Positions 1 through 25,884 of a DNA stretch of 64,000 bases are shown one piece after another. Both the position numbers and the translations under genes were made by a program. A model generated the notes under the pieces. The model was given only the letters and a program-made list of their open reading frames with translations, was not told the origin of the DNA and ran no database searches. Source of the DNA: Zancudomyces culisetae HAW-14-8 (taxonomy: Eukaryota; Fungi; Kickxellomycota); NCBI GenBank assembly GCA_052426225.1, contig JBNJNM010000024.1, forward strand, positions 52,274-116,273, given 5' to 3'. How positions within the stretch are numbered: position 1 is the stretch's first letter; each line of letters begins with the position of its first letter.

Positions 1-936
1 ATAAAACTAAAAAATATATATAAAATAACAGATTATGATAGTTTGCGAAATGCTAAAGATAATATATATAATATTTCAGCAAAAATAGACGGTGTTATAT
101 TGACCAATGAAAAGGGTTATTATAATACAGTGTATAAATCTAAACCAAATCCTACAGTTGATTTACAATATATTAATGGATATTTATATTTAGCTAGAGA
201 AACCAATTCGCAAAGAATATCTCATATCGAGCTGGAAGAAGGATGTATATATGAGTTTGATATAAATTTAAATCCAATTAGAAAAAGAGAAGATAAACTT
301 ATTCCAAATTATTATATGCCGGTTAAAGATGATGTTATTGATAATATATGCACAGGACATGGTATTCCATGTCTAAGATATCACCATAACAAAATAAAGC
401 TTATTATGCTAAAAAAATTTAATGGAATATTATTAGATATAGGTTCTGGATTGGGTGGTGATATATCTAAGTGGGATCATTTCACTAAAGTGTATGCTAT
501 AGATCCCGAGACCAGGCTTAGAAATGTATCGGCAAATATAACATTTCTAAGATGTAAAGTTCAAGATATAAAAAATATATATTTTGATATAGTAAGCATA
601 TTTTTCGTACCATGGTGTAACGATTTCATCAAATTCATGCTCCGATCTAAACATGCTCTACTTATTATTATGGATAAACCTTCCGATCTAGATAGTGATA
701 ATATAAAAATTACCAAATTGGAAAACAACATGGTAAATATAAATATACCCAATACTAGTACAGCTTCGAATATAACGGAGGAAATACCAGATATAAAAAA
801 TATAGATAATATTATGATTGGAAACGGATATAAAAAACATGATTTGACTCATAAATATAACATATCATTTGCGACTAAAGAGGAAAAAGAACTCTCCAAA
901 ATGTACACATATATAATATACTCCAAAATAATGTAA
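1..936 (+). CDS. mRNA capping enzyme, 3' part (inverted copy, truncated by window start)
   Basis: Identical to the C-terminal half of 11934..13748; the TTG 'start' at 43 is an internal Leu. Confidence 0.9.
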   Translation: MKLKNIYKITDYDSLRNAKDNIYNISAKIDGVILTNEKGYYNTVYKSKPNPTVDLQYINGYLYLARETNSQRISHIELEEGCIYEFDINLNPIRKREDKLIPNYYMPVKDDVIDNICTGHGIPCLRYHHNKIKLIMLKKFNGILLDIGSGLGGDISKWDHFTKVYAIDPETRLRNVSANITFLRCKVQDIKNIYFDIVSIFFVPWCNDFIKFMLRSKHALLIIMDKPSDLDSDNIKITKLENNMVNINIPNTSTASNITEEIPDIKNIDNIMIGNGYKKHDLTHKYNISFATKEEKELSKMYTYIIYSKIM

Positions 937-1154: not shown

Positions 1155-2078
1155 TCATTTTCTCATTTTCGATATTTTATTTTTAATATCATCGGGGATT
1201 ATATCTTTATATCTATCCAATAATAGATCTATTCTATTTAGACCGGGATCTATTTTGTAAGTTTGCATCGGTTTGCGTGTGTATGTAGGTGATGGTTTTG
1301 GTTTCGTGTATGATGTATTCACACCGTCAATATACGTATTTAATTTATCTTCATTTTTAGCTTCTGGTGTTATTTTTGGTGTTTTTTTCTTATTTAATAT
1401 TTCTCTATAATTAACAGCTTTACTACTTACGCCATTCGCATATATCTTTGTTTTCGCGGGCTTATTATTTTTTCTGTTAGTCTTTTTATCATTTTTATCA
1501 TTTTTATCATTTTTATCTCTTTTATCATTTTTATTAGCTTCGCGATGGATACGAACCTTTGTTCTCGCGGATGAGGCTGTATTTATATATTTTTTACCAT
1601 TTATATTTGTTACATTGAAATTCAATATATCATTACTCCATGATAGACAATCATTATTTGACATCTGACACTGTGTGTTATTTAATCCGGAATTATTTAT
1701 TTTGGAAGGGTATAACATATTTTCATTTTTTTGTATGAAGAATTCTTCCTCGAAATATAAACAATCACTTTCATAATCAGCATTCAATATACCATAATGG
1801 GTAAATGTAGTATTTAAGTTTTTTATAGCATATTTATTATCACCCATATTATCAAAAACTAGTAAAGGATCTGTAACCATATCATCATTTATAATTTTAT
1901 ATGTACTTCTGATTACATGTCTATCATCCGCTGTAACCCCCTTGTATAAATTAACCCCGTTGATACTATAACATAGATAAGATAAATTATCCTCTATATC
2001 ATTCATTAGTAGAAAGAAGACGGTATCACCAGCATGTATACCGCATAAAAATAAAATATATAATAATATATCTCTCAT
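1155..2078 (-). CDS. Putative secreted protein with basic low-complexity C-terminus
   Basis: Signal-peptide-like MRDILLYILFLCGIHA; NDK repeats and Lys/Pro-rich tail. Confidence 0.7.
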   Translation of the reverse strand: MRDILLYILFLCGIHAGDTVFFLLMNDIEDNLSYLCYSINGVNLYKGVTADDRHVIRSTYKIINDDMVTDPLLVFDNMGDNKYAIKNLNTTFTHYGILNADYESDCLYFEEEFFIQKNENMLYPSKINNSGLNNTQCQMSNNDCLSWSNDILNFNVTNINGKKYINTASSARTKVRIHREANKNDKRDKNDKNDKNDKKTNRKNNKPAKTKIYANGVSSKAVNYREILNKKKTPKITPEAKNEDKLNTYIDGVNTSYTKPKPSPTYTRKPMQTYKIDPGLNRIDLLLDRYKDIIPDDIKNKISKMRK

Positions 2079-2225
2079 TTCAATTATATTCTATTTTATA
2101 TTGGTATATTCTATTTTTATATTGGTATATAATATTTATATTTATTAGACAATGTTCAAATATGATTCTTTATTAATCTAATTAAAATATATATCATAAA
2201 TATATCATAAATATATTATATAAGT

Positions 2226-5200
2226 ATGCTAGCGTTATTTATTATTGGTATTTTATTTATACCAAACATTAACAGTTATTGCAGCAAATGTCAAGATTGG
2301 GCATTAGGCGTATCTATCGTATCATACAGTGGTACATATAAAGCTGTTGATCAATACAACTCATTATCAACTTCTGGTTGGGATAGTATGAGCTTTGGTA
2401 ACTATAAACTAAACATTAGACGTGATGGATATTTTATTTTGTCCGACAAAGATTCTGGTGTATGGTGGAGTGGTACTTCGGGTTCGGCTAGTAAGTATGA
2501 TGTTGTGATGCAGCCTGATGGTAATCTGGTATTATATGCAGATGGTAATAAAGCTACATGGGCTTCTAACACTGCCAACAGAGGAACGGGTCCGTATTGT
2601 GCTATGCTTCAACGTGATAGAAACTTTGTTATTTATGATAATAATTGTTCAGCTACGTGGGCTAGCAATACAGTAAAACCTGATCCAACTCCGGATAAAG
2701 ATGGCAATTGTTATTTTATAACAGTGCAACCTGGTGATTGGTGTCAGAAAATTATAGATGACGCTGGCATTTCGTCAACTCAGTTATTCGATTATAATAA
2801 AAGTACATGGAAATGGGATGGGTGTGATAAACTATACCCTGGTCAGAAATTATGTATATCTCCTGGTAAACCTCCTATTCCAACTCCAGATCCCAATGCA
2901 GAATGTGGTCCTTTAGCACCCGGAGATAAGTATAATACCGATTGTCCTTTAAACGCTTGCTGTGGTGAATGGGGTTATTGTGGCATTACCGAAGACTTCT
3001 GTAAAAAGAAAAACAGTACAACTAACGCTCCAGGCACTACAGGTTGTTATAGTAATTGTGTTATCGAATACGTAATGTCCGAACCCCCTTCTAATTTTAG
3101 AAAAATTGCTTATTATGAAACATGGAATCAAAACTGGCCATGCTTGAACAAACGTATTGACGAAATAGACTGGTCTCAATATACCCATCTTCATTATGCA
3201 TTTGCCGATATTGTTGATTATAATGTCCAAATGGATTTCAGAGCTAGAGAGCAATTCGAAGCTTTTAAATCTCTTAGAGGTATTAAGAGAATATTAAGTA
3301 TAGGTGGTTGGGGTATAAGTACAGATAGTGGTACATATAATAATCTTAGAAAAGCTGTAGCTAATTGGGAAGTATCTGCTGCAAATGTGGCCAAATTTAT
3401 TATCGATAATAATCTGGATGGTGTAGATATAGATTGGGAATATCCAGGAGCTACTGATATTCCAGGTGTTCCAATTGGTGATTCTTATGATCCAATATAT
3501 TATACATTGTTTGTTTATGAATTATTTATTAAACTTTATCCATTAGGTAAGACTGTATCTATAGCGGCACCAGCTAGTTATTGGTATCTTAAGAATTTTA
3601 TAATAGATATAATGTCGGAATTTACAGATTATATAGTATTTATGACTTATGATTTGCACGGACAATGGGATTATACCAATTTATGGACAGGTAATTATCT
3701 TAAGTCGCACGTAAATATGACTGAAACTTTAGAAATGCTAGCTTTGATAACACATGCAGGCGTAAAATCCAATAAAGTTTTATTAGGTATTGCTAAGTAT
3801 GGTAGAACTTTTGGCATGGAAGATCCCAACTGCTACGGTCCAGATTGTAGATTTGCCGGTATAGAATCAAAAGCAAAACCGGGTAAATGTACAAATACAC
3901 CTGGTTATTTAGCTTTGGGGGAAATTAGAGATATTCTGAAAAGCGAAACTATAAGAAAACATTATGATGACGATCTATCTCAGATTCTGGTATATGGTAC
4001 AGATCAATGGGTTTCTTATCTTACAGATGAACAAATTAGCTTCAGAAATGATCTAGCCTCATTCGCCAATATGGGGGGTACTGTTACGTGGGCAGAGGAT
4101 CTAGATGCCGGAAATAAAATATCATGCGACACATCAGATATATACGATTTCAATACACTACTGTCATCATCATGTACGCGTAACTATTTAAGAGATATTA
4201 TGGTTGATTATATAAAAGGTGTAATATCATACTGGAGAAGCAATGCATCTTTAACTTATGATAGTGATATAAAACAATTCAAAGATAAATTCAATATAGT
4301 ATATTCTATAAGTTCAAAAGCCGATTATGATGAATTATTTACAAAAATGGATAAGTTTATAACTAATATAGATGTTAAAAATGATAATAACTACGCCATA
4401 TTATATTTTTATTATAAGAGATGTATCGTATTTGGTTCTTCCATTAATTATAATAATAAAAAGAGAGGATTAAATGAACCCTTTGTTGGAATGATAAATA
4501 CTTCAGCTATTGGTGTTTTTGTTTATACTGGAGTTCAAGTGTATACAAGTGGGTTACAAGCTGCTTTATTGGCGATATCAATACCAGGGCTAGCTTCTGG
4601 TGTAGTTGTCGGAGCAATTTCACTTGGTTTACTCGCTATCGCCACGATAATAGCAAATTATAATAAAGACACATTTCCCATCCCCGATGATCTAATGAAA
4701 ATTATTAATAGTAATCAAGCGAATTTAGAACATACAATAGAATTAATAAATAATCCCACAAATTCAAAGTATCCTGTTGATTTTGTAATAAATGATGATT
4801 TAATAGGGTATGATATGGAAAAATATCAGGATCAGTATAGTATTCAACCGGTAAGTGATATGCCTATGATTTTACAACATAAAGCTTATTTTAACTGGTA
4901 TAAAAAAGCTACGAGTCCGCAAAATTATTGTGTTAGAAATCCCAATATAGATGATGATTATAATATATTTACGAAAACTATAACAGAAAATAATGATGGA
5001 GATGATGAGCCGATATACTATGTAAACTTTCACGGTCGGAGCGTAGGTGTAGCATGCAATGCTTATATTTATTTCGTGTTTACAGAAATTAATAGACTTA
5101 GACTTATTAATGGGGATGATGATGCAATAGATGTCCCGCAAGAACTACTACCCGTTGCATATAATACATTTACACGTCGACCAGACGGTCGAAAGAATGA

Positions 5201-5675
5201 CGACCCTTATCTAGATCAGCATTCGTGCGTTAATCTACCCGGTCGAATAATTAATCGAAGTGATAACAAAACAATGGTAATACCAGATTATCAAAGAGAT
5301 GAATTTCCATTTGGAAGTATGAGTGAAGGAATGAATAACATAACAAATCCGGACGAATATTATATTTCTGTTAGATGCGTTTATAAAAGTGAAAATACAT
5401 ATGACGGTATACAATTTCGCCATTTTTTAAATGCGACTGGAATTTGGAAAAAAAACGACATATTAAATCCTTTATCATCTCCTCGCGTTGGACCTATACC
5501 TCCCGGGGGGGCTTTTCGAGTATATTTATTAAATTTCAACCCAACTCTATGTCAGCAATCAGCTATTATTCCTGTGAGAACAGGATTACGACAAGGAGTA
5601 AGAAATTATTTCAATGAGTTTTTTCCTGTTAGTAACGAGCCTGTAATTATACAGCAAAGAAAAAAAGGAATATGA
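2226..5675 (+). CDS. Killer-toxin (zymocin alpha/beta-like) precursor: B-lectin, LysM, CBM18, GH18 chitinase, hydrophobic segment, NucA/NucB-like nuclease
   Basis: Signal peptide; QPDGNLVLY and QRDRNFVIY lectin motifs; TVQPGDWC..LYPGQKLCIS LysM; CPLNACCGEWGYCG hevein; LDGVDIDWEYP GH18 catalytic motif; KKR; Gly/Ala-rich hydrophobic stretch; RDEFPFGSMSEG..SVRCV..SEN. Confidence 0.9.
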   Translation: MLALFIIGILFIPNINSYCSKCQDWALGVSIVSYSGTYKAVDQYNSLSTSGWDSMSFGNYKLNIRRDGYFILSDKDSGVWWSGTSGSASKYDVVMQPDGNLVLYADGNKATWASNTANRGTGPYCAMLQRDRNFVIYDNNCSATWASNTVKPDPTPDKDGNCYFITVQPGDWCQKIIDDAGISSTQLFDYNKSTWKWDGCDKLYPGQKLCISPGKPPIPTPDPNAECGPLAPGDKYNTDCPLNACCGEWGYCGITEDFCKKKNSTTNAPGTTGCYSNCVIEYVMSEPPSNFRKIAYYETWNQNWPCLNKRIDEIDWSQYTHLHYAFADIVDYNVQMDFRAREQFEAFKSLRGIKRILSIGGWGISTDSGTYNNLRKAVANWEVSAANVAKFIIDNNLDGVDIDWEYPGATDIPGVPIGDSYDPIYYTLFVYELFIKLYPLGKTVSIAAPASYWYLKNFIIDIMSEFTDYIVFMTYDLHGQWDYTNLWTGNYLKSHVNMTETLEMLALITHAGVKSNKVLLGIAKYGRTFGMEDPNCYGPDCRFAGIESKAKPGKCTNTPGYLALGEIRDILKSETIRKHYDDDLSQILVYGTDQWVSYLTDEQISFRNDLASFANMGGTVTWAEDLDAGNKISCDTSDIYDFNTLLSSSCTRNYLRDIMVDYIKGVISYWRSNASLTYDSDIKQFKDKFNIVYSISSKADYDELFTKMDKFITNIDVKNDNNYAILYFYYKRCIVFGSSINYNNKKRGLNEPFVGMINTSAIGVFVYTGVQVYTSGLQAALLAISIPGLASGVVVGAISLGLLAIATIIANYNKDTFPIPDDLMKIINSNQANLEHTIELINNPTNSKYPVDFVINDDLIGYDMEKYQDQYSIQPVSDMPMILQHKAYFNWYKKATSPQNYCVRNPNIDDDYNIFTKTITENNDGDDEPIYYVNFHGRSVGVACNAYIYFVFTEINRLRLINGDDDAIDVPQELLPVAYNTFTRRPDGRKNDDPYLDQHSCVNLPGRIINRSDNKTMVIPDYQRDEFPFGSMSEGMNNITNPDEYYISVRCVYKSENTYDGIQFRHFLNATGIWKKNDILNPLSSPRVGPIPPGGAFRVYLLNFNPTLCQQSAIIPVRTGLRQGVRNYFNEFFPVSNEPVIIQQRKKGI

Positions 5676-6139
5676 AATATTTATTTTTTAAAATGTCTAG
5701 TATAGAAATTAATAATCTGAAAGAATTATTTTTCAATTCATCTGATAAATATAAAAATAACAGTATAGCTATTTTATGCTGTCATTATTCGGGTTTAAAT
5801 TTGTCAAATGGTTATATAAGAAGAACAATAACATCAACTAAGCGTGCCGTGAAATATCATAAATCAGATATTATACAATATGTAGAAGATATAAATATAC
5901 ATAAAAATATAATAGCTATATTATGTACGCCTTTAATATCTAATAGTGATGAAGATGATAAATTAATGATGCACTTTCTTAAAATACTTAATTGCTCTAA
6001 AGCTATGATTATATATCCAAGTTCTGTAAGAATTTTTTCTATGAATAATGAAGGTACGAATATATATCAATTTTTCAGTTTTGATGCATCAACACAATTA
6101 ACCGATCTGATATCATATTTAAGGGATTTGAGACATTGA
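5672..6139 (+). CDS. Hypothetical protein, candidate toxin immunity factor
   Basis: 155-aa ORF overlapping the toxin stop (ATGA), no signal peptide; function inferred from position only. Confidence 0.6.
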   Translation: MKYLFFKMSSIEINNLKELFFNSSDKYKNNSIAILCCHYSGLNLSNGYIRRTITSTKRAVKYHKSDIIQYVEDINIHKNIIAILCTPLISNSDEDDKLMMHFLKILNCSKAMIIYPSSVRIFSMNNEGTNIYQFFSFDASTQLTDLISYLRDLRH

Positions 6140-6200
6140 AGCATCACCTATTATTATATGAATATATAACTCATTTTAAAATATTTAAATTAATATTAAA

Positions 6201-7121
6201 ATGAATATAGACGAATACAACCCTTTAAGCAGTATTGTTTGTAATTATGCAAATTTTAAATTCATAATACCTGGTGAGTTTAAATCTGTATCTATCGATG
6301 ACAATATTTTCTGTATAAAAAATGAACATCACTCTTTGGGAGAAGAATTTAGCATATTATTAAATGAAAATGGAGATAAAATGTATATTGCGCATAATAA
6401 TAAATATTTATGCATGATGAACGATAAAATGGGTGCGTGTGATCATTTAAATGATAATATAATTATTCTGGATAAAGTATTTAATGACTACAGATTTTGT
6501 GATGTATATAGAATAAAGTGTGGAGATCTATATTTAAATAAAAGTATGACTTTTGAATATTCCGATAAAAATGCAATTATATTACAACTGGACTCGTCTA
6601 ATATGATAAATACTGATAATTTGTCCAATTTTGCATCTGACACGCAAGATGTAATAACAATGAATGGTATCAGTATTCGAAATAAAGGTGCATTTTTTAT
6701 GCGTTTAGCTCATGAGGGTGAAACTGCTTATATTACTATAAACATAGATGACGACATTCCGAATGAAAATGATATAGGAAAAGTGTATATATTTGATGAT
6801 AAATTTTATAACTCACCATTTGGAATATTTTTTGAATTCTATAAAGATGATATTGATGATAAAGAAAAGACTTATCTAAAAGTTATGGATCTTATCAGTA
6901 GAGAGGAATATTATATAAATTCATATTTTAAACTATCTATAAATCGTATAGATGACGGTATTGAGTTTGTAGAATCTAAATATAAAAGCGCATATTATAT
7001 AAAAAATATAAAATACAACACATATTATGCTATAGAAGACATTAATTTCGGGCATCCATATGAAATAAAAAATATTGATGATATAAAAGATGCGTTATTA
7101 TTTCAGTTTATTCATTTTTAA
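6201..7121 (+). CDS. Hypothetical acidic, beta-rich protein
   Basis: 306-aa ORF; its C-terminal ~60 aa are paralogous to 7530..7724. Confidence 0.7.
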   Translation: MNIDEYNPLSSIVCNYANFKFIIPGEFKSVSIDDNIFCIKNEHHSLGEEFSILLNENGDKMYIAHNNKYLCMMNDKMGACDHLNDNIIILDKVFNDYRFCDVYRIKCGDLYLNKSMTFEYSDKNAIILQLDSSNMINTDNLSNFASDTQDVITMNGISIRNKGAFFMRLAHEGETAYITINIDDDIPNENDIGKVYIFDDKFYNSPFGIFFEFYKDDIDDKEKTYLKVMDLISREEYYINSYFKLSINRIDDGIEFVESKYKSAYYIKNIKYNTYYAIEDINFGHPYEIKNIDDIKDALLFQFIHF

Positions 7122-7147
7122 TATTTTAAAGTTTTAAAATTTTTAAT

Positions 7148-7561
7148 TTATTGAACTTCATTATTAAACCAATTTATGCATGCTCCAAAAGCATTATCGC
7201 AGAATGTCTGGCAGTATACCGACGAGTAAAGATCATAACAATCAAAATTAAGTTTATAGCCATTACCTTTACACGTGTAGAATGGCGTGGTATTTATTTT
7301 ATATGTGCCATTGGAAAAATCAATGTTTAAATCACCTATTCCCAGTTCGACATGATAATTTCCTTCATAGAATCCCATAGTTTTAACTCCTAAAGCAAAA
7401 CTGTCGTATTGTTTCATTTTCACATCATTGTATAAATAGACACATGCCGAACCTACATTGTGAAATGGTTTGGATTTATATCCTGATAGTATAAATAAGC
7501 ATGAATCAACCTTTAAAACAAATAAAATATTAAAAATAAATAAACTGAAATAATAACGCAT
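7148..7561 (-). CDS. Small secreted cysteine-containing protein (effector/toxin-like)
   Basis: Hydrophobic N-terminus MRYYFSLFIFNILFVLKVDS-C; 7 Cys in 137 aa. Confidence 0.7.
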   Translation of the reverse strand: MRYYFSLFIFNILFVLKVDSCLFILSGYKSKPFHNVGSACVYLYNDVKMKQYDSFALGVKTMGFYEGNYHVELGIGDLNIDFSNGTYKINTTPFYTCKGNGYKLNFDCYDLYSSVYCQTFCDNAFGACINWFNNEVQ

Positions 7562-7724
7562 CTTTTATATTTTTAGTATTGGATATAAATATAGGGAAAC
7601 TATAATTTTCATCATTTATATTATAATATGTGTTATGAATCACATTTTTTATAAAATACATACCTTTATATTTAGATTCTACAAATTCAATACCATCATC
7701 TATACGATTTATAGATAGTTTCAT
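7530..7724 (-). CDS. 64-aa paralog (or remnant) of the C-terminus of 6201..7121
   Basis: Shares KLSINRIDDGIEFVESKYK and IKDALLFQFIxF. Confidence 0.55.
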   Translation of the reverse strand: MKLSINRIDDGIEFVESKYKGMYFIKNVIHNTYYNINDENYSFPIFISNTKNIKDALLFQFIYF

Positions 7725-9393: not shown

Positions 9394-11487
9394 TTATATA
9401 TTGTTTACCATTCTAAACACTTTACCGGATGCTTCCATCACCGAATCTATTGATTTAGAAATGTTATTTAAATACCACTTATAATCAATGGGGTCGGTAT
9501 TATCAATGGGTCTTAGTTTATCTCCGAGATTATTTTTACCATTTTCCGTAGTTGATACGAATACAAAAAATGTTTCACCTTTTTTTAATGGTCCGTATTT
9601 TCTATTATATACTTCTAATGGATAATTATCCATTTTATAAGGTCCATTGTATATTTTCTTTATAATAAATTCGGATTTATCTAAAGTATGAATATTTGAT
9701 ATCAGCATTCTACAGTGATCTCTAAACAATATATCATTCATTACTCTATATGTTATATCTTTATATATACTAACTGCAAATTTGCATCTATCTCTTCTAA
9801 CAGCTACTACTCCTTTATATTTAATATTATTATCATAATCCAATGTTATATACATTTTCTTACCTAATGAAAGAAATTTTTTATATCTACATTCAAACTT
9901 CATTTTTATCGGATCTGGAAATAGATTAGTAACTTCATCAGCTAGTTTTATATGCATTTCATCATTCATTTCCACATCGTTTGTATATATACACGAATCT
10001 GTATCGCCATATATTACATCAAAACCTTTATCAGTTAAAAAAGTTATAGATTTTTCCAGATTTATTCTACCTATATAAGTTATCCTGGATGCAGCTTGTG
10101 TAAAACATAACTCACCAGCAGAACCAAAAATTCCATATACAGAATTTGCACATATTTTTAATGCATTAGCATATGGTTTATTATTTTTATATTTAACTCT
10201 AGCATCAACTAATTTTTTTACCATGTTGGGAATAATACCAAATTTAGTTTTATCAAAGAATTTACCATTCCATGTACTATAGCATATATTTTCGGAAATT
10301 ATAATAGAAGGATATAATGATGTGAAGTCCATACATGCAGCATGTTTATATAATTTTGGTTTGCATTCTACAACTATAGCTCCTTTATATTCATCTTTAT
10401 CATATTTGTTAAATTCCATATGATAATTATACTTTTTACATTCGATATATAACATATTTTTCATTCTTATCTGCTGCCCCCTAGTAAATAATTCTTCAAC
10501 ATTGGTATATGTTATATTAGATAAAGAAATGATGCTTTCCAGCATGGAACATTTTTTTGCGATATCCATGACCAATAGACAATCTTTGACGCAATATTTT
10601 ACTATATCGGATATTTTATCTGGATTTTTATGTATGTTATCCCATAAATCCCACATTTCATAAGAATTTAAATCTTCTTTATATCCGCAGTTGAAAAAAT
10701 TGGAAACGGTATTTAATCTATAATCGTCTATATTAAATGTACGTTTACAGTAATGATATAGATCTACACATAATATACCATCTATACTAGGGTAGCTTAT
10801 ATCATTATTGGTGTATGCAGAACTACTCCATGTAATTTCAATCATTTTTGAATCTAGTGGATGTCTAGCATTTATATATCTCCAGTCGAAACCGTGTGTA
10901 TTATAACCAATTAATATATTTGCAGATTTTATATAATTGTAAAAATTGATAATTAATTCATCTTCGCTATTGCAATATTTAATGTTGGTAGATTTTATAT
11001 CTATATTGGTATTAATAAATGTTATATTATCGCATTTATTAGATACGACACTTATGCATATAATTGAATCTTCTTTTTTCTTAGGATCTGGGAATGTTCT
11101 ATCGCGAGAATAGACTTCTATATCAAAACTCATTATATGCAATTCGGGAATTATATCTATGGATAAATAATATATATCATGCATAGATAAATTTTCCAGA
11201 TCATTATTAATTAATTTGATCCAGCAACATTGTTTCAAACCTTTAATATAAAGAAATTCCAGTACACTATTCTTATGTTTTCTAGTTTGTATATCTACCA
11301 TTACATCTTTTGACATTATAAGAGATTTTTTTCTTAAATTGCAACCTTTCACTTCTACAGTGGGATAAAAATCTTTTATAATTATATAAACATTATCTTT
11401 ATCTTTATTAGCGATACCGTATCCATATATCCAATTATTTTTATATTCCCATTTATAGATAAAAATTTTCATTGTTTCTTTATCCAT
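9394..11487 (-). CDS. polB: Family B DNA polymerase (RNA-primed, delta/NCLDV-like)
   Basis: ExoI SFDIEV, ExoII GYNTHGFDWRYI, ExoIII YCVKD, DFTSLYPSII, KICANSVYG, YGDTDS, KKMY, KGVVAVRRD. Confidence 0.97.
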   Translation of the reverse strand: MDKETMKIFIYKWEYKNNWIYGYGIANKDKDNVYIIIKDFYPTVEVKGCNLRKKSLIMSKDVMVDIQTRKHKNSVLEFLYIKGLKQCCWIKLINNDLENLSMHDIYYLSIDIIPELHIMSFDIEVYSRDRTFPDPKKKEDSIICISVVSNKCDNITFINTNIDIKSTNIKYCNSEDELIINFYNYIKSANILIGYNTHGFDWRYINARHPLDSKMIEITWSSSAYTNNDISYPSIDGILCVDLYHYCKRTFNIDDYRLNTVSNFFNCGYKEDLNSYEMWDLWDNIHKNPDKISDIVKYCVKDCLLVMDIAKKCSMLESIISLSNITYTNVEELFTRGQQIRMKNMLYIECKKYNYHMEFNKYDKDEYKGAIVVECKPKLYKHAACMDFTSLYPSIIISENICYSTWNGKFFDKTKFGIIPNMVKKLVDARVKYKNNKPYANALKICANSVYGIFGSAGELCFTQAASRITYIGRINLEKSITFLTDKGFDVIYGDTDSCIYTNDVEMNDEMHIKLADEVTNLFPDPIKMKFECRYKKFLSLGKKMYITLDYDNNIKYKGVVAVRRDRCKFAVSIYKDITYRVMNDILFRDHCRMLISNIHTLDKSEFIIKKIYNGPYKMDNYPLEVYNRKYGPLKKGETFFVFVSTTENGKNNLGDKLRPIDNTDPIDYKWYLNNISKSIDSVMEASGKVFRMVNNI

Positions 11488-11755: not shown

Positions 11756-11895
11756 TTTTAAATAGTTAGCTATTTAAATAAAATAGTTTTAAAACTTTTT
11801 TTATATATTGTTATTTGATGATATGCTATATTCCTATATACAATATATATATTTCGATAATATTAGTATACATATTTTTTGTTATTCGAAAAATA
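11756..11895 (-). repeat. Inverted repeat IR-B (140 bp)
   Basis: Reverse complement of 975-1115 and of 27007-27147. Confidence 0.92.
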
Positions 11896-11933
11896 AATAT
11901 TATTTTTAATATAAAAACATCATAAAATATTTA

Positions 11934-15367: not shown

Positions 15368-17131
15368 ATGAATATTCCAATATATTACGAAGATAACCCT
15401 CATAACTGCATCGAAAATGTATCATTTACCACAACAACCCCGGAACAAAATTTTGTTTTATCATATATGCATCCTAAAACACCATATAGAAGTCTACTAC
15501 TATCATTTCAGTTGGGAATTGGAAAAACTTACTGCGCAGCTGCCTTATCATATTTATTCAATATCAATGGTTTTGATGTCATTTTCATATCGCATAACAC
15601 AAATACAATAACAAATTTTAAGAATGAATATAAAATTTTTATAAATGAGAATAGATTAAATAGTAAAAGTATGAATATAAAATATTACGGTTTAACAAGC
15701 TTCTCGAGAAATAAAGTGAATATAGACAATTCTTTGGTAATTATAGATGAAGCTCACAATATGAGAGAAAATGCTAGCAGATATACATATATAAAAAAGA
15801 AAATGCATGATTCCACCAACTCGAAACTTCTTATAATATCAGCCACGCCAATGATAGATAATCCTAACGAATTGAAATCATTATGCAATATGCTACCCAT
15901 AGAAACGCCAATAGCTTATGCCGAAAACACGTTTAAATACGGATATGGTGTTTATATACTAAATAAAGATATAAAATATTCGAATAATTCGGAAAAAGAT
16001 ATAATCAATAACAATATGCTATTCGCGACCGAAATGAAAGGTTTACAGTTAAAAAAATATAATGATGAAAAAGGTAAAAAATGCAAAGATATATATACAA
16101 CATTACGTCAGCTAACATTAAGTACCGGTGTTTATAACAAAAATATTCCTTTAGAAGAACAGTCAGCCAAAATAAATTTTCTTATAAATAACATACCAGA
16201 AAATGAATTGGTTGTAGTTTTTGTTTATTATATAAAAAGAGGGATTACGTTTTTATGCGATGTTTTAAATCATTTAGGTTGGACAACAGTAAGAGGTCAG
16301 GAGAAATCTTATGCTGTAATAAATGGTAATGTATCTACCGAAGAAATAAATAATATATTGCGGGATTTCAATAGCTTGCAAAATTATAACGGAAAAGTAA
16401 TACGTCTTTTGATAGGAAGTAACGTGCTTAACGAATCTATAACTTTGAAAAACGTAACAAATGTACATATATTAACACCGTATTGGAATTACGGATATAT
16501 AAATCAGGCTATAGGCCGTGTTATACGAAAAGGTTCTCATACATCCAATGTACAAATAAAAATATATAAGCATGTATGCTTAAATTCTATAGATATTGAT
16601 ATGTACAAAATAGCATACGATAAAAATATAAAGATATTGGAAGTTATGAATGATATTAAAACAGAAAACGTATGCAAACCTCTAGCCGAGATATTCAATC
16701 CACCAATACCCGATAATATACAAATATTTCAAATTGATGATTTTATATGGGATTTTAGGAAATGCTTCGATATAAATGAAAATAAAATATCATGGTGCAA
16801 TGTATATCCGGATAAAGCTGAGTGTTATGATATCGTAAATCGAAAGAAATCTATAAGCGTATGCTCGGATATGAACATATTTACAACTCGCGATTATCCA
16901 AACACTCCACTTATATGGAGAAGTTGTGTAGATAGAAGATTAAGATTTACATATATAGATATAACGAAGAATAAAAAATTTCAAAGAAGAGGTAAACTTA
17001 TAGATAATATGAATCGTGATGAATGGGAAATAATAAAACAAACACTCAAAATTGATAAAAATATCAACATAATAGACTATATTTCAAAAAATAACTACTA
17101 TTTTGAAGAGCAAATATATCTCAAAGAATAA
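15368..17131 (+). CDS. SF2 DExH helicase, poxvirus D6/D11 (VETF small subunit/NPH-I)-like
   Basis: RSLLLSFQLGIGKT, IIDEAHN, ISATPM, ESITLKNV..VHILTPYWN..QAIGRVIRKGSH. Confidence 0.9.
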   Translation: MNIPIYYEDNPHNCIENVSFTTTTPEQNFVLSYMHPKTPYRSLLLSFQLGIGKTYCAAALSYLFNINGFDVIFISHNTNTITNFKNEYKIFINENRLNSKSMNIKYYGLTSFSRNKVNIDNSLVIIDEAHNMRENASRYTYIKKKMHDSTNSKLLIISATPMIDNPNELKSLCNMLPIETPIAYAENTFKYGYGVYILNKDIKYSNNSEKDIINNNMLFATEMKGLQLKKYNDEKGKKCKDIYTTLRQLTLSTGVYNKNIPLEEQSAKINFLINNIPENELVVVFVYYIKRGITFLCDVLNHLGWTTVRGQEKSYAVINGNVSTEEINNILRDFNSLQNYNGKVIRLLIGSNVLNESITLKNVTNVHILTPYWNYGYINQAIGRVIRKGSHTSNVQIKIYKHVCLNSIDIDMYKIAYDKNIKILEVMNDIKTENVCKPLAEIFNPPIPDNIQIFQIDDFIWDFRKCFDINENKISWCNVYPDKAECYDIVNRKKSISVCSDMNIFTTRDYPNTPLIWRSCVDRRLRFTYIDITKNKKFQRRGKLIDNMNRDEWEIIKQTLKIDKNINIIDYISKNNYYFEEQIYLKE

Positions 17132-17173: not shown

Positions 17174-17689
17174 ATGATATATAATAGCATAGATAAAACA
17201 TTGATAAGTTTATCCGACGATAAAAGAAAATTGGGTGAGGGATTTCTAATCGATATATACTATGATGGAGGGATTCTACAGATATCAGAGAAAAACAAAT
17301 TCATGATAATAGATGGTATAACAACAACTAAATATAACAAGAGACAAATTTTGTTGAAATCTAAAGTTCTAACAAAGATGATAAATGATATAATAGATTC
17401 AATATCAGAAAAATATGACATAACAGTAACTGATCCTTTTTATGACGGCAACATTAAAATAAACATAAATGATAAAACAAGAATAACTGATGTAAAAACT
17501 AGAAAAATTCTAAATACCGATTTAACCGGTAAAATTTTCTACGCATGTATATCAATTACTGTCCAATCCATTTTCCAAATGAATACAAAAACTACTATTC
17601 AGTTAAATGCTAATGAAATAGTAATATGCAAAGTAAAAGATAGTGATCTGGAAATAGATATATCTAAACTCACATTATCCGAAATTTAA
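17174..17689 (+). CDS. Probable single-stranded DNA-binding protein (OB-fold, NCLDV-type)
   Basis: 171 aa; beta-strand pattern ACISITVQSIF..TIQLNANEIVI and acidic tail; adjacent to the helicase. Confidence 0.45.
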   Translation: MIYNSIDKTLISLSDDKRKLGEGFLIDIYYDGGILQISEKNKFMIIDGITTTKYNKRQILLKSKVLTKMINDIIDSISEKYDITVTDPFYDGNIKININDKTRITDVKTRKILNTDLTGKIFYACISITVQSIFQMNTKTTIQLNANEIVICKVKDSDLEIDISKLTLSEI

Positions 17690-19172: not shown

Positions 19173-19462
19173 ATTGACTATATTTTTTCGGTGATAATTT
19201 GGATACGGTAAATTTGAATATTCTGAATTATATTCATATATATTTATATTTTCAACAATGGTTTTAAATCCGTATTATATACTATTTTAAACCTATTTAT
19301 AATATTTAAAAAAAGTTATCAATAATAACTGGACAGTTATGCCGCGAAATAAACATAAATATAAAAAATATCCATATCTCCCAGATTTATATTTTTCTGT
19401 TAGATGAAATTATTAAATATAATATCGCTTAAAAAATATAATATCGCATAGGGTCATATAAT

Positions 19463-19516
19463 ATATTTAATACTTTTACAATTATAATAGTATGTTATTT
19501 GTAAAGTATTAAATAT
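19463..19516. repeat. AT-rich imperfect palindrome (18-bp arms)
   Basis: ATATTTAATACTT(T)TACAA ... TTGTAAAGTATTAAATAT. Confidence 0.75.
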
Positions 19517-19685
19517 TACATTCGATAAAAATATACCATGTATAAAGCTTGGTTAGATAGATATTTTATATGAGTATTTTTTATAGTTTTATGCTATAAC
19601 TATTTAATAAAATCATCGTGTAAAGCTAACAGATATATTATATATACTATTTACCAAATAAAATCGGCTGACAAAAAAATATTTG

Positions 19686-20141: not shown

Positions 20142-20445
20142 TTTCTTTAACGTTATCCACTATGCATTCAATTTCAAATGTATCAATGACATCAAATGAT
20201 GTAATCCATCTGATGGGTGGTAGTATGTAAACTCCTTCTTGAATCAGATTTCTATTGGCCTCGAGTTTAAGTCTTAATTTACCTATTTTATCGCAATTTG
20301 CTCCTAATATATGTGATATTAGTAACTTATAAGGTACGCTGAAAGATTTATATGATATCAATCTTACAGCTACAATGGTGGGAATTTCAGTCATTAGATG
20401 GTTATTGGAATTTGAATATGAAGAAATAAATCCTCTTATATTCAT
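20032..20445 (-). CDS. Hypothetical protein, possibly Rpb7-like (likely start 20394)
   Basis: GANCDKIG...FEIECIVDNVKENEV...GLFF loosely follows the Rpb7/RpoE' pattern; overlaps the RNAP small subunit gene. Confidence 0.35.
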   Translation of the reverse strand: MNIRGFISSYSNSNNHLMTEIPTIVAVRLISYKSFSVPYKLLISHILGANCDKIGKLRLKLEANRNLIQEGVYILPPIRWITSFDVIDTFEIECIVDNVKENEVCYMPGNKLQKEQYVNGKHGLFFGNNTENFKRFS

Positions 20446-21793
20446 AGATAATTTTAATATGTCAGAATTATGGCCTTATATATCTATTAAAAATGTATCG
20501 TTGGGATATAACGGGAAATCACCACAGATAAATAAGGATAAAGAATCAGATTTTTTTATGTTTAGTAAATATAGAATTTATAGAATGAATAAAAATAAAG
20601 GATCTGTTATCACATATGACATAATTTCAGCTTTATCTAGCCTTTCAAATATAATAAATATAACAAAAACTACATCATTAGCACATACAGTATTATACAG
20701 ATGGAATTTCGATTTTCATATATTGTTAAATATTATAGAAATGATGGAAGATATGGAAATATTGGAAGACAATAAACCATGTTTAACAAGAGCAACAGTT
20801 AGATACAAAAAGATGGAAATGGATATAGTATCTGGTGTTATATCGCATTCATCATCCAACCAAGAAGAACATGATGAAATGGATAAATTATGCGCAGAGT
20901 TGGAAGAACAATATAATCGAGAAGCTGATAATTATATTAAAATATTCGATATGCTAGATAAGCCAAGTATAGATCCGGCAAGTATACATCAATCTATAGA
21001 TTATGAGGTTTGGTATAAAGCTCGTAGAGAAAATCAGAGAGAATGGCCTATGATATCAAAAAAACCTTTAAATAAGAGTTCTATAGAATTCAGAGGTAAT
21101 TATTATTCGAATCCAGATACAAATAAATATGTGAGATTGAAAGAAAGATATGATGATAATCCTTATATATATTTACCGAGATTATATTCTACTTATCAGA
21201 GTACCGATAAATATATATCGAAAAAAAATACAATACCGGTAATTGTAAGAAGAATATGCGAAGAAAATGGAACATTTTTGAAACAACGTAAACACAATAC
21301 GGAAGCATCGATATATATTGATGCGAGAGGAAAATTTATATCAACAGATATAAATCCTAAATATATCGTAATGGATGGTATTATAATAAGCACTTTTGAT
21401 AAAAGAATAGATATACATAAGTATCATGCTGATATATGTGCTCAAGTTCTTGATTCAGACTGGAATATATCAAAGATATATATAAAATGTATTAAAGATG
21501 AATATGAAAACGAATATAACTACGAGGAAAAAATAGTAAACGGAGTTAGGATAAACAATATACCAGTATTGCCTTATTATTATAAAGAAATAATCCATGA
21601 TTATAATTATTTAAATAGATTGAGATATGGGCCATTGATGGATTTGAGTTATATAGGAATAGTGAAGCCTAATGATAATGATATAATAACATTCCCATTC
21701 GATAAGAAGCGTACGATATACTGTAGTGGTATGTTGGAGACACATAGATTAAAAACTTTTAAGTATAAAAAGAGCGTATATGAATTTAGATGA
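20375..21793 (+). CDS. Probable early transcription factor large subunit (VETF-L/A7-like), reduced (likely start 20459)
   Basis: YKARRENQREWPMI..FRGNYYSNPDTNKYVRL..NPYIYLPRLY..Q resembles the conserved VETF-L block without its cysteines. Confidence 0.5.
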   Translation: MVGISVIRWLLEFEYEEINPLIFIDNFNMSELWPYISIKNVSLGYNGKSPQINKDKESDFFMFSKYRIYRMNKNKGSVITYDIISALSSLSNIINITKTTSLAHTVLYRWNFDFHILLNIIEMMEDMEILEDNKPCLTRATVRYKKMEMDIVSGVISHSSSNQEEHDEMDKLCAELEEQYNREADNYIKIFDMLDKPSIDPASIHQSIDYEVWYKARRENQREWPMISKKPLNKSSIEFRGNYYSNPDTNKYVRLKERYDDNPYIYLPRLYSTYQSTDKYISKKNTIPVIVRRICEENGTFLKQRKHNTEASIYIDARGKFISTDINPKYIVMDGIIISTFDKRIDIHKYHADICAQVLDSDWNISKIYIKCIKDEYENEYNYEEKIVNGVRINNIPVLPYYYKEIIHDYNYLNRLRYGPLMDLSYIGIVKPNDNDIITFPFDKKRTIYCSGMLETHRLKTFKYKKSVYEFR

Positions 21794-22599: not shown

Positions 22600-25500
22600 A
22601 TGTCATCATACGACTATACAAGTTTTGGACAAATTGAAATATATAATATATATTATCCATATAATACGAATATAACTATATTGAATAATCCATCTCAATG
22701 TATAAATAATAAATTGAGTTATGTAGCAATTATAGAAAATAAGAGAATACCAATAATGATTGGTTCAGATATTCATTTATCTATACATAAAAATGATAAC
22801 CCCATAGAAATGTATGGATATTTTATTATTGATGGTATATGCAAATCATTATCTCTAATTCTTATGATGAGCAATACTTTATATACTAAAGATAGAGCTT
22901 ATATTTCCGAAAGTAGAAGAATAAGCATTATTTCTATGGGTAACTACGAGCTAACACTAAAAGGTAAAACTACCAAATGGAATTTGCCTATTAATTACGA
23001 TTTGATATATCGCAAATCAGTGGATATGCATAAGTTAAAAACTCATCTAGATTTAGTGGCTAAAACTAAGAAGACTAAATTTTCTAAAGAAATATCAGAA
23101 GATGATGCCGTCATATTATGTTATATGTTTGAAAACTGGCTTGGTATAACTAATAATGTTAATATTAAGAGAAGATTGATAACGCCCGGTGAGCTGATTT
23201 ATGATTGCATCAAACATGAATATGATGTTGTTAAATTTTTCCGTACACACAACTGGGTTATAAAAAATATACAGAACGTTACTTCTATATCGGAAGATAT
23301 GAAACATTATTCTATTTTAGGAGATATAGAATCTATAAGACGTATAACATTTCCCACGGCAAGAGAACATATGTCTATGAAAGAAAGATTGGTTAAAGAT
23401 GAATATAAATATCTGATATGTCCTGTGCAAACTTCTGATGGTTCTTTATGCGGTACAATTTTATATTTATCTAAAGATGCTAGAATAACTCATAAGAATA
23501 CAGATTATGAAATCATCCATAACGATGCATCAAATTGTAATAATATTCATAATATTCATAATAATATCCAAACAAATGAATGGGTATTTAATTATAACGC
23601 ATCATCAACTATTGATGAGTATTATCTTTTTATCGATGGTAAATTCAACGGTAAAGTCAAAGATGTAAAAGTGTCAAATAATGATAACATATACAAAGAT
23701 GATAGAATAATAATAGTATGGACACATAACGGTAGAATTTATAATCCTATTAAAGATAGATATGTATCTGTAACAGCTGATTATATTCCATTTATAACAC
23801 ATAATCCAGCTGTTAGAGCGATGTTTACTTGTAGTATGATTAAACAAGCTCTAACTGTTGATAATAGATTAAAACTACCGTTTAATGATGTTAAATGGCT
23901 TATAAAAGGTGAGCAACCAATAATTGGTAAATCTTTTCCAACTCCGTATGGTTGGAATCTAAAAACGGCTATAATGCCATGGTATGGATTTAATATAGAG
24001 GATGCTGTTGTTATAAGTAAATCTACCAGTAAAAAATATATGAGTGTTAAACAAAATTGTTATTCATGTAGATTGGAAAGTTCCGAAGATAGAATTTTAA
24101 ATGTGTATGTTAAAGTTGGAGATTATGTCAGCAAAGGTAGCGAATTGTTTAAATCGTTTAAACCGTCACAAATAACTACTATTGAAAATGTTAGGTCTAA
24201 TCACGTAGGTATAGTATCTTCTATTTTATATAATCCAAAATGTTTTACCATAGTTGTTAGGAATTACAGAAATATCAAAATTGGCGATAAAATGTCCAAT
24301 AGACATGGTCAAAAGGGTATTGTAAGCTTAATACTTGATGATGAATATATGCCTCAATATTATGATGATTCGGAGAATGCATGGATTAATATAGATTTGT
24401 TAATAAATCCACATGCATTTCCGGGTAGAATGACTTACGGACAGATAAAGGAAATGGGGGAAAAAGAATATAATGTCAGATTTAATGATGGTAATGGTAA
24501 TATAAAAAATGTAAAAAATAAAATTTTGGTTGGTATATGTTATTACATGGCTTTAAGACATCAAGTAGATGATAAAATACAATATAGAGATTTCGGACAA
24601 ATTGATAATATAACAAAACAAGCCAAATCAGGCAAATCGAAAAATGGAGGTTTAAGATTTGGTAGTATGGAAAGAGATATTATGATAGCCATAGGATGTC
24701 ATGATATACTAGAAGAGATATATAAGATGGATAAGACTATAGCGTATTCTTGCTCAATATGCGGGTTTATATCGACTCATATAATTAATAAATATTGCGA
24801 TGGGTTTAAAGATTGTTTAACGAATTCGCCAAACAATAAAAAAGACGTGAATGAAGATGACAAGTGTACATTTGTCAAGATAAACTGCAATCAATATCTA
24901 CTAATTTGTTGCTCTTTGCTGAGATCCAATGGTTATGATATACGATATTGGTATGACGCGAATGAATATTCTATAGTTGATTATTCCGAAAATGAATATA
25001 ATAAGACCAATGATTTATTCTTCGGCGATACAGATTTATTAGATGTGCGATTCTATAAAAACACACCGGTACTACCATGCATATTGAGATCTACATATTT
25101 AAATAATCTATATAGTAGATTTGGTGCGGGTAAAAAAATTATTAAAGAACATAAAAGATTATTATTTGGAAAAAATGGAGCTTATCATAGATTAGTTGAA
25201 GGTCATAAGATAAATCACTGTCTAAGATCAGTTATTGTACCAAATCCAGAACTGCCTATTGATACAATAGAAATACCATTTGGATCCGATATTGGTACGA
25301 GTTATGGGTTATTGAATAGACAGCCATCATTAAGTTATAAATCGATAATGTCGGTTAAATTAGTGATTGGTAATACACAATGTATACGCATAAATCCTTT
25401 ATTATGTAGTTCTTTTAATGCCGATTTTGATGGGGATGAGATGTGTGTTTATGGTATGAATAAGATATATACCGAGTTACCAGTAAGGCCTATATATATA

Positions 25501-25884
25501 CAAGATTATATATTGGGTATATCTTGCTCTTCAGATAATAATCATAGTCAACTTTTATCAATACCCGATAATAAAAAAGAGTATAGATATCCAAAACATA
25601 TAACAGAAGATGGTTTAACAGCCAACAAAGAAGGTATATACACTATGATAAATAATAAAAGCAAAGGTAAAGATTTCAATTTTAAGTTTATATACGAAAG
25701 AATTGGAGACGTTATAGTTCAGAATGAAAAAATCGGTACTATAGAAAGTTGTTATCAGAAAGGATTATCAGATGATGAGTGGTATTTGCAAGCTAAAGCT
25801 GCTAGAGAAGCCGCATCTACTATTGGTATATATACTCCTTATACAGGAGAATTGAATTCTATATGCAATAAGAAATCAATATAA
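22600..25884 (+). CDS. DNA-directed RNA polymerase, fused beta (Rpb2) + beta' (Rpb1) catalytic regions
   Basis: GYFIIDG, CPVQTSDG, GFNIEDA, GDKMSNRHGQKG, NPHAFPGRMT, GGLRFGSMERD, then RSVIVP, LLNRQPSL, FNADFDGDEM and a bridge-helix-like GLSDDEW..AAREA. Confidence 0.95.
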   Translation: MSSYDYTSFGQIEIYNIYYPYNTNITILNNPSQCINNKLSYVAIIENKRIPIMIGSDIHLSIHKNDNPIEMYGYFIIDGICKSLSLILMMSNTLYTKDRAYISESRRISIISMGNYELTLKGKTTKWNLPINYDLIYRKSVDMHKLKTHLDLVAKTKKTKFSKEISEDDAVILCYMFENWLGITNNVNIKRRLITPGELIYDCIKHEYDVVKFFRTHNWVIKNIQNVTSISEDMKHYSILGDIESIRRITFPTAREHMSMKERLVKDEYKYLICPVQTSDGSLCGTILYLSKDARITHKNTDYEIIHNDASNCNNIHNIHNNIQTNEWVFNYNASSTIDEYYLFIDGKFNGKVKDVKVSNNDNIYKDDRIIIVWTHNGRIYNPIKDRYVSVTADYIPFITHNPAVRAMFTCSMIKQALTVDNRLKLPFNDVKWLIKGEQPIIGKSFPTPYGWNLKTAIMPWYGFNIEDAVVISKSTSKKYMSVKQNCYSCRLESSEDRILNVYVKVGDYVSKGSELFKSFKPSQITTIENVRSNHVGIVSSILYNPKCFTIVVRNYRNIKIGDKMSNRHGQKGIVSLILDDEYMPQYYDDSENAWINIDLLINPHAFPGRMTYGQIKEMGEKEYNVRFNDGNGNIKNVKNKILVGICYYMALRHQVDDKIQYRDFGQIDNITKQAKSGKSKNGGLRFGSMERDIMIAIGCHDILEEIYKMDKTIAYSCSICGFISTHIINKYCDGFKDCLTNSPNNKKDVNEDDKCTFVKINCNQYLLICCSLLRSNGYDIRYWYDANEYSIVDYSENEYNKTNDLFFGDTDLLDVRFYKNTPVLPCILRSTYLNNLYSRFGAGKKIIKEHKRLLFGKNGAYHRLVEGHKINHCLRSVIVPNPELPIDTIEIPFGSDIGTSYGLLNRQPSLSYKSIMSVKLVIGNTQCIRINPLLCSSFNADFDGDEMCVYGMNKIYTELPVRPIYIQDYILGISCSSDNNHSQLLSIPDNKKEYRYPKHITEDGLTANKEGIYTMINNKSKGKDFNFKFIYERIGDVIVQNEKIGTIESCYQKGLSDDEWYLQAKAAREAASTIGIYTPYTGELNSICNKKSI

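Follow-up and report, generated by a model that had tools for sequence, protein, structure and literature searches.

Where does toxicity reside in fungal linear plasmids that encode a zymocin-type chitinase? Two recent surveys found that many such plasmids carry the chitinase and no working toxin gene (Heneghan et al. 2025; PMC13348850); these toxin-less carrier plasmids are called "cryptic" in budding yeasts and, outside the Dikarya, come with gamma candidates that are nontoxic in yeast. The same question is posed by a gene of Zancudomyces culisetae HAW-14-8 (Kickxellomycota) at positions 2226 to 5675 (+) of the 64,000-nucleotide stretch that we analyzed and refer to as the window (GenBank assembly GCA_052426225.1, contig JBNJNM010000024.1, positions 52,274 to 116,273 of the forward strand). 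The original prediction for this gene, made from the DNA letters alone, described a single-gene toxin in which a chitin-binding and chitin-digesting carrier of the zymocin alpha/beta type brings along its own C-terminal NucA/NucB-type DNase. Our follow-up leaves little doubt that the gene encodes a zymocin-type plasmid carrier with a NucA/NucB-family tail. This nuclease, which appears catalytically intact, offers a concrete candidate answer to where toxicity resides.

As judged by profile matches and alignment, the C-terminal domain is a real member of the NucA/NucB family in which the catalytic D-E and N are retained. In the whole protein, the Pfam family DNase_NucA_NucB (PF14040) matches amino acids (aa) 990 to 1072 with 24.3 bits (gathering score, 23.8), and a scan restricted to the C-terminal 339 aa reaches 26.6 bits (E = 9e-6). 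Several relatives pass the gathering score independently (P0002, 27.5 bits; P0004, 31.3; P0006, 30.4; P0007, 32.1; P0041, 25.2; P0011, 24.6), and the tails of some others score below it. A family profile of 16 members, searched against 177,635 PDB sequences, ranked Bacillus licheniformis NucB (5OMT) first (E = 0.009) and aligned DEFP with DRDE and SEN..DG with SDNRG. NucB was reached only with this profile; a single-sequence PDB search with the tail gave no match.

In NucB, Asp93, Glu94, and Asn117 are each essential for activity, and Glu94 replaces the usual histidine as the general base (PMC5758888). The counterparts of these residues are D1025, E1026, and N1057. Among 17 aligned sequences, the E and the N are invariant and the remaining position is always D or E, a pattern that spans plasmid, nuclear, dictyostelid, and stand-alone copies (the dictyostelid protein P0012 entered the alignment as a single contiguous exon stretch, L007:13212-13808, with exons not joined). 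The three residues lie in the motifs RDEFPF (aa 1024 to 1029; nucleotides [nt] 5295 to 5312) and KSENTYDG (aa 1054 to 1061; nt 5385 to 5408). Also invariant or nearly so are F1027, P1028, G1035, C1051, G1061, and four cysteines (944, 1001, 1051, and 1109). The Pfam search thus bears out the NucA/NucB assignment of the original prediction, with the family threshold passed and the catalytic D-E and N kept.

Structure prediction points the same way with less force. An AlphaFold model of aa 919 to 1149 (predicted local distance difference test score [pLDDT], 74.5; predicted template modeling score, 0.76) has the order strand, hairpin, strand, helix; the D-E pair closes a strand and the N opens the next helix, as in beta-beta-alpha-metal nucleases. 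When this model was compared with 350,542 PDB chains using Foldseek, the top three matches were all NucB (template modeling score by target, 0.47 to 0.58; probability, ~0.55), and EXOG and EndoG stood lower in the list. The structural comparison proposed with the original prediction is concordant in ranking NucB first and in the strand and helix order, and it is weak in its E values (0.24 to 0.93).

Like Bacillus NucB and NucA, the tail belongs to a secreted protein and combines DRDE-type and DN.G-type motifs, which supply metal ligands and a glutamate general base, with a strand-strand-helix core that is here predicted. It differs from NucB in its length (~200 aa versus 110 aa), in a hairpin loop that is 8 residues longer, in an N-terminal PVYYIN/GVACN extension, in its cysteine pattern, and in its fusion behind a carrier and a membrane segment. 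Taken together, the conserved positions make it likely, though well short of certain, that the tail is an active nuclease.

To place the tail among known proteins, we ran a full HMMER scan of aa 811 to 1149 against 1.84 billion representatives (E < 1e-3). Because this exhaustive scan returned only 12 relatives, we conclude that the tail family is small. A word-indexed search with aa 760 to 1149 gave no match, a profile search for further stand-alone relatives recovered only the three known ones, and tail scans of viral contigs and of bacterial and archaeal genomes gave no match. The relatives are full-length LysM/hevein-type/GH18 proteins of Umbelopsis (the P0001 cluster includes U. nana) and Coemansia, one nuclear intron-containing dictyostelid gene (P0012), stand-alone secreted proteins of ~350 aa from the mycoparasite Piptocephalis, and a few metagenome proteins. 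P0004, P0006, and P0007, from Piptocephalis and metagenomes, each consist of the nuclease domain and a basic C-terminal extension (~350 aa in all). One extra metagenome locus from the tail scans, L009, encodes a 565-aa nonchitinase protein with a subthreshold NucA/NucB match.

When the whole protein was used as the query, the best matches were plasmid chitinases of Umbelopsis and Coemansia, with 38 to 42% identity over 85 to 90% of the length. The tail itself was matched by 38 of the 155 fetched proteins even at an E value of 10; all except one of these are non-Dikarya or metagenome proteins (37/38), and none of the Dikarya group C-II chitinases among the 155 matched at this cutoff. The exception, P0005, is a Chinese hamster repeat protein that we rejected as a chance low-complexity match.

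The original prediction had suggested looking for homologs with swapped C termini, and such homologs exist. Sister carriers of group C-II share the LysM/hevein-type/GH18 carrier followed by a C-terminal effector, which in these proteins is not a nuclease; it is a necrosis-type Hce2 domain in Aspergillus (P0094) and a beta-barrel pore-forming domain (BB_PF) in Polysphondylium violaceum (P0052). Other sister carriers end in 350 to 400 residues without a Pfam match. Because sister carriers bear other tails, this comparison supports the tail position as an effector slot in which modules (nuclease, Hce2, pore former) have been exchanged. In social amoebae, carrier-type genes are nuclear and contain introns; P0012, with its NucB-like tail, lies on the dictyostelid nuclear contig GL290989.1 (L007:10001-13811), and P0052 carries the pore-forming tail. 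Nuclear copies of the chitinase without plasmid context are also present in Coemansia, as in the dictyostelid. The dictyostelid copies suggest either transfer between fungi and dictyostelids or great age. A related 27-kb metagenome element (L002) carries KilA-N/DUF3627 proteins, F-box-like proteins, and an aspartic protease (15791-16678, 20650-21561, and 19393-20451) along with two chitinase genes.

The part of the protein in front of the tail has the composition expected of a zymocin-type carrier. The gene is a single 1149-codon frame with no interruption, for which the chance expectation is p ~5e-46 (random-codon stop probability of 0.087 at this base composition), and identical copies at 28258-31707 and 54290-57739 bring its occurrences in the window to three. 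Its G+C content is 31 to 33% (window positions 2001 to 6000), compared with ~25% for the remaining element. Every feature listed in the original prediction (signal peptide, lectin, LysM, hevein-type domain, GH18, KKR, hydrophobic segment, and C-terminal motifs) was recovered in its place. The GH18 domain retains an intact DxxDxDxE catalytic motif (DGVDIDWE; aa 398 to 405, nt 3417 to 3440). Bulb-type lectin domains (B_lectin) are built of beta-prism II repeats and bind sugar through the motif QxDxNxVxY. The lectin region of the window protein scores 26.1 with B_lectin (PF01453), under the Pfam cutoff of 32.4; it matches solved bulb-type lectins (SCAfet, E = 3e-23; antifungal gastrodianin, E = 3e-22; pyocin L1, E ~1e-13) and contains two exact copies of the sugar-binding motif (aa 96 to 104 and 129 to 137). 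In Pfam scans, no fetched homolog has an N-terminal lectin; among the fetched sequences, the window protein alone carries one.

Between carrier and tail lies a putative processing site followed by a membrane-type segment. The hydrophobic segment reaches a Kyte-Doolittle peak of 2.45 at aa 785 to 803, a strong membrane-type stretch, and is preceded by a weaker stretch, so that a hairpin of the two is possible in the window protein. Immediately before this segment, the Umbelopsis-type proteins, Coemansia RSA2673, and Dipsacomyces have KR or RR aligned with KKR747. The dibasic site noted in the original prediction is therefore conserved in relatives, which supports a Kex2-type cut that would release a 45-kDa fragment comprising the membrane segment and the nuclease. 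The invariant cysteines argue that the tail either folds on the luminal or extracellular side or binds metal.

The claim that a single gene suffices did not survive. A 137-aa secreted Cys-rich protein is encoded beside the chitinase, and a second secreted open reading frame (ORF), of 307 aa, lies upstream. Because the 137-aa partner gene is conserved beside the chitinase, we conclude that the system is at least a two-gene module of chitinase and partner. The partner has a signal peptide, seven cysteines, and an invariant Y69-H70-x-E72, and its homologs (24 to 43% identity) adjoin the chitinase gene in seven loci (L001 to L006 and L008), among them Umbelopsis-type plasmids, Coemansia plasmids, and a nuclear copy. 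Neither Pfam nor PDB contains a relative of the partner family. It belongs to a family of "gamma-toxin candidates" of 130 to 167 aa, three members of which caused no growth defect when expressed in Saccharomyces cerevisiae (Heneghan et al. 2026, PMC13348850); these candidates reach only half the length of established gamma toxins, and the conserved Glu-8 is missing from most of them (PMC13348850). Published criteria for a gamma subunit are a secreted protein of 200 to 350 aa with a Glu near the mature N terminus and a His and a Cys near the C terminus (Heneghan et al. 2025). By these criteria we found no gamma subunit beside the chitinase: the neighboring protein is 137 aa long and has no similarity to known gamma toxins, and the 307-aa secreted ORF has no C-terminal Cys.

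One locus hints at how carrier and partner might be joined. In L001 (chitinase, 3138-6329; partner, 6357-6785), no counterparts of Cys733 and Cys902 are present in the carrier and none of Cys97 in the partner; all three are kept in every other locus. The link between zymocin beta and gamma is an interchain disulfide (preprint 10.1101/2024.10.25.620242). The joint loss is possibly a trace of interchain disulfides between carrier and partner, read from a single event in which cysteine parity is ambiguous. A related argument from cysteine parity for a disulfide between tail and partner is weakened by the odd Cys count of the alpha-like part as well, and we retain it as a lead only.

The other ORFs of the toxin module are less informative. 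ORFs of 155, 306, 307, 398, and 300 aa have no Pfam family and no convincing homologs in related loci. The 307-aa ORF is possibly a second secreted component. The 155-aa ORF has no ATNTGA hexamer of its own and is not conserved in related loci; it may be cotranscribed and serve immunity or an accessory function, or it may not be a gene at all. The 137-aa gene is flanked by an imperfect inverted repeat (6930-7138 and 7512-7721; 79% identity), through which the 3' part of ORF 6201-7121 recurs as a 64-aa ORF (7530-7724, -); this hints at a past inversion or duplication.

The toxin module sits on an element that carries its own replication and transcription genes. A 26,032-bp unit (first complete copy, positions 975 to 27006) is present 2.46 times in the window, in exact copies arranged head to tail. 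In addition to the genes listed in Table 1, the unit encodes DUF5474 (Pfam). DNA polymerase B, helicase, DUF5482, DUF5483, DUF5474, and RNA polymerase make up the gene set of yeast pGKL2-type helper plasmids, and ATNTGA is a known promoter element of yeast linear plasmids. We searched the 150 nt upstream of each ORF in window positions 1 to 27006 and found the hexamer 64 to 87 nt upstream of 10 of the 18 ORFs; its background density is 2.1 per kb per strand. This distance to the ATG is greater than in yeast plasmids. Because the chitinase toxin module, the helper gene set, and the ATNTGA hexamers share one unit, we conclude that the 26-kb unit is a killer-helper fusion element of the zymocin-type linear-plasmid kind and not chromosome. 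With these genes, the Pfam domains of the protein, and its plasmid-chitinase relatives, the zymocin alpha/beta-type carrier of the original prediction is well founded.

Killer-helper fusion elements have been described in budding yeasts (PMC11848437), and a 36-kb fusion element of Umbelopsis has internal inverted repeats and no clear terminal ones (PMC13348850). In the window, positions 1 to 1115 are the reverse complement of 11756 to 12869, and the first 974 bases are unlike the later copies, being instead an inverted copy of 11897 to 12869. The inverted repeat that brackets the toxin half is accordingly at least 1.1 kb in copy 1 and only 141 bp in the later copies. This arrangement could reflect a concatemer, flip isomers, or an assembly artifact. 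No Pfam family matches the 604-aa ORF (11934-13748, -) that lies ahead of the 697-aa DNA polymerase; this ORF may encode the terminal protein as a separate gene, and the ORF at 43-936 (+) is its truncated inverted duplicate.

Table 1. Features of the toxin module and of the helper genes in the first copy of the unit (window coordinates)
Feature	Position	Strand	Basis
Carrier-plus-nuclease precursor, complete ORF, 1149 aa	2226..5675	+	Reading frame and Pfam
Predicted signal peptide, ~aa 1-18, core LALFIIGILFI	2226..2279	+	Read from sequence, hydropathy peak
Bulb-type (monocot mannose-binding) lectin domain, aa 47-149	2364..2672	+	Pfam, PDB lectin matches, motifs
LysM domain, aa 165-211	2718..2858	+	Pfam, 25.1 bits (cutoff 20.9)
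Hevein-type chitin-binding domain (Chitin_bind_1), aa 236-262	2931..3011	+	Pfam, 29.6 bits (cutoff 27.8)
GH18 chitinase domain, aa 294-627	3105..4106	+	Pfam, E = 5e-42
KKR, Kex2-type dibasic site, aa 745-747, just before the hydrophobic segment	4458..4466	+	Sequence, alignment of relatives
Hydrophobic Gly/Ala-rich segment, aa 752-810	4479..4655	+	Kyte-Doolittle hydropathy
NucA/NucB-like nuclease domain, predicted beta-beta-alpha-metal fold, aa 929-1129 (PIYYVN...GVACN to VRNYF)	5010..5612	+	Pfam, family profile, AlphaFold
D1025-E1026, aligned to NucB Asp93 (metal ligand) and Glu94 (general base)	5298..5303	+	Alignment
N1057, aligned to NucB metal ligand Asn117; first position of the predicted beta-beta-alpha helix	5394..5396	+	Alignment, model
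137-aa secreted Cys-rich partner protein	7148..7561	-	Synteny and alignment
307-aa ORF, signal-peptide-like N terminus, Lys/Asn-rich basic tail; divergent from and upstream of the chitinase	1155..2078	-	ORF list, Pfam and homolog searches
155-aa ORF without signal peptide; ATG overlaps the chitinase stop (ATGA)	5672..6139	+	ORF list, promoter and homolog searches
Family-B DNA polymerase, 697 aa, the element's own	9394..11487	-	Pfam
Helper-module helicase	15368..17131		Pfam
Helper-module DUF5482	17174..17689		Pfam
Helper-module DUF5483	20375..21793		Pfam
Plasmid-type RNA polymerase, two-domain	22600..25884	+	Pfam

How would such a protein act? We see about an even chance that the locus serves as toxin module to a cytoplasmic linear plasmid, or virus-like element, of the zymocin type and works as a carrier plus nuclease in five steps. 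The 1149-aa precursor would be secreted, and its lectin, LysM, hevein-type, and GH18 domains would attach to a competitor's mannan/chitin wall and breach it. A Kex2-type protease would cut at KKR747, yielding the 45-kDa fragment with its hydrophobic membrane-insertion segment and NucB-type nuclease. The nuclease would be active, would be the cytotoxic part or one of them, and would be carried across the membrane of the target cell, aided by the hydrophobic segment. The 137-aa Cys-rich protein would travel as a bound partner, either as a coreleased inhibitor or chaperone that is secreted with the carrier or as a second cargo. In this scheme we infer proteolytic processing, enzyme activity, a DNA or RNA substrate, translocation, killing, and the role of the partner. 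For the tail as the translocated toxic part, our estimate lies at even chances or a little below; the nontoxicity of three gamma candidates in S. cerevisiae speaks for it by leaving the toxic moiety open.

The stand-alone secreted versions of the nuclease domain in the mycoparasite Piptocephalis speak for this carrier-plus-nuclease mechanism, and several observations weigh against it. The relatives have one strong hydrophobic stretch only, which makes the topology hard to read. The four invariant cysteines suggest disulfides, and with them a domain built for the oxidizing outside rather than the cytosol, or else a metal site. The Foldseek E values are nonsignificant taken alone, and a first structure model of 339 aa, which included the linker, reached a pLDDT of only 52 and gave meaningless Foldseek matches before we replaced it with the trimmed 231-aa model. 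No immunity gene was recognized, since ORFs 5672-6139 and 6201-7121 have neither a Pfam match nor a homolog. In Debaryomyces hansenii, strains whose plasmid proteins bear NucA/NucB tails did not antagonize either of two test fungi in a plasmid-dependent way (PMC8472843). Finally, the strictly conserved partner with its Y-H-x-E motif could be the toxin itself.

This last point leads to the classical zymocin logic, in which the 137-aa protein is the toxin in the gamma role, the chitinase delivers it, and the NucB-like tail is the beta docking/uptake part or an accessory enzyme. Retention of the partner gene beside the chitinase in plasmid and nuclear loci alike would fit a toxin, as would its secretion; its invariant tyrosine, histidine, and glutamate could form a ribonuclease-type acid/base pair, and the joint cysteine loss in L001 is compatible with an interchain disulfide like that of zymocin beta and gamma (10.1101/2024.10.25.620242). 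Even so, three family members did not inhibit growth of S. cerevisiae, the proteins are small for gamma toxins and mostly without Glu-8 (PMC13348850), and the family lacks a relative in Pfam or PDB. A docking role alone would also leave the fixed catalytic positions of the tail across very distant lineages unexplained. We regard the partner as sole toxin as unlikely, if a serious contender.

Two further explanations place the tail outside the target cell or deny it activity. The nuclease could act extracellularly alongside the chitinase, on DNA of lysed hyphae or matrix, for nutrition or wall attack, or the whole protein could be defensive for the producer. Bacillus NucB is itself secreted and degrades extracellular DNA (PMC5758888), and "cloaking" has been proposed for chitin-binding proteins of cryptic plasmids (Heneghan et al. 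2025). The conserved cysteines fit an extracellular protein, stand-alone relatives in Piptocephalis are secreted, and both Coemansia and a dictyostelid have retained nuclear copies outside any plasmid. An extracellular enzyme, however, has no need of a conserved dibasic site and hydrophobic segment exactly between carrier and tail, the layout of zymocin and AB toxins; the gene is part of a selfish plasmid, a setting in which toxins are known to be the cargo under selection, and sister carriers bear overtly cytotoxic tails. An extracellular or defensive role thus seems quite improbable to us. Alternatively, the NucA/NucB match may reflect a chance motif or a domain that has decayed to a remnant, with the tail catalytically dead, as might be read from a Pfam score barely over the threshold, relatives that fall below it, weak Foldseek E values, and a domain twice the size of NucB. 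Several relatives score 4 to 8 bits over the threshold, however. Because the invariant residues are the catalytic ones and three independent methods rank NucA/NucB first, we consider a dead domain very improbable indeed.

Comparison with known systems shows what is familiar in the carrier-plus-nuclease protein and what is not. It shares the layout of the zymocin precursor (Kluyveromyces lactis pGKL1 ORF2) and of the PaT, DrT, and PiT carriers: a cytoplasmic linear plasmid that encodes a family-B DNA polymerase and helper genes of its own, a secreted protein with chitin-binding domains and a GH18 domain with DxxDxDxE, a dibasic site followed by a hydrophobic C-terminal part, and a small secreted protein encoded nearby. 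Unlike these carriers, it has a NucB-type domain after the hydrophobic segment and an extra N-terminal mannose lectin; unlike in zymocin, the neighboring secreted protein lacks the hallmarks of the gamma anticodon nuclease, and no recognizable immunity gene was found. The resemblance to nuclease colicins and pyocins (such as colicin E9 with Im9), in which receptor binding, translocation, and a C-terminal beta-beta-alpha-metal nuclease occupy one chain, is by analogy only. These are bacterial proteins without homology to the carrier, and an immunity role for the 137-aa partner would be hypothetical; the lectin domain does match that of the lectin-like bacteriocin pyocin L1.

The architecture has a precedent, and the pairing of chitinase and NucA/NucB is already known as an annotation. 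In D. hansenii, the 1226-aa pDH5A ORF2p was described with an autolysin fragment, chitin-binding and GH18 domains, Kex2 motifs, one transmembrane region, and a NucA/NucB "fragment" (Polomska et al. 2021, PMC8472843), and the same work speculated on killing by DNase and on small downstream ORFs as protection (PMC8472843). Like the window protein, pDH5A ORF2p, pDH4B ORF2p, and pDH6A ORF3p are secreted and combine chitin-binding, GH18, Kex2, transmembrane, and NucA/NucB parts, with short nonsecreted ORFs downstream in the plasmids. They differ in belonging to a budding-yeast lineage and in lacking a lectin, and the domain search behind their description recorded only a "fragment" and did not look at catalytic residues. 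Our full HMMER tail scan did not retrieve them, so that they are at best very distant from the window tail. Beyond Polomska et al. 2021, our literature search found no paper linking NucB-type domains to chitinases. With the tail taken into account, the truly closest relatives are chitinases encoded on plasmids of Umbelopsis, Cunninghamella, and Coemansia (PMC13348850). There, too, the same small secreted gene lies next to the chitinase, and the plasmids are fusions of killer and helper parts in which the inverted repeats are internal. To this group the window protein adds a new member that is richer in A+T and carries an additional lectin domain. The 2026 study (Heneghan, Salzberg and Wolfe) took the small secreted protein as the toxin candidate and made no mention of the nuclease tail (PMC13348850). 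What is new here is that a NucB-like tail with fixed catalytic residues is common to the whole non-Dikarya plasmid chitinase clade and is tied to a conserved small partner, with a mannose lectin added in the window member.

A broader proposal, which we put forward as a tentative and rather doubtful one, is that the NucB-like tail serves as warhead throughout an ancient clade of plasmid toxins that spans Mucoromycota, Zoopagomycota, and "cryptic" yeast plasmids such as those of Debaryomyces. These would be the first self-delivering fungal nuclease killer toxins, built like nuclease colicins, and the 137-aa protein would be a coreleased inhibitor or chaperone rather than a toxin. If true, this would explain both why the published gamma candidates are harmless and why "cryptic" plasmids persist. 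Should the tail prove inactive or purely extracellular, the finding would amount to one more member of a chitinase clade that has already been described. If the carrier-plus-nuclease mechanism holds, fungal killer toxins would extend from RNA-cutting cargo to one-chain proteins that unite carrier and nuclease, like the nuclease bacteriocins of bacteria.

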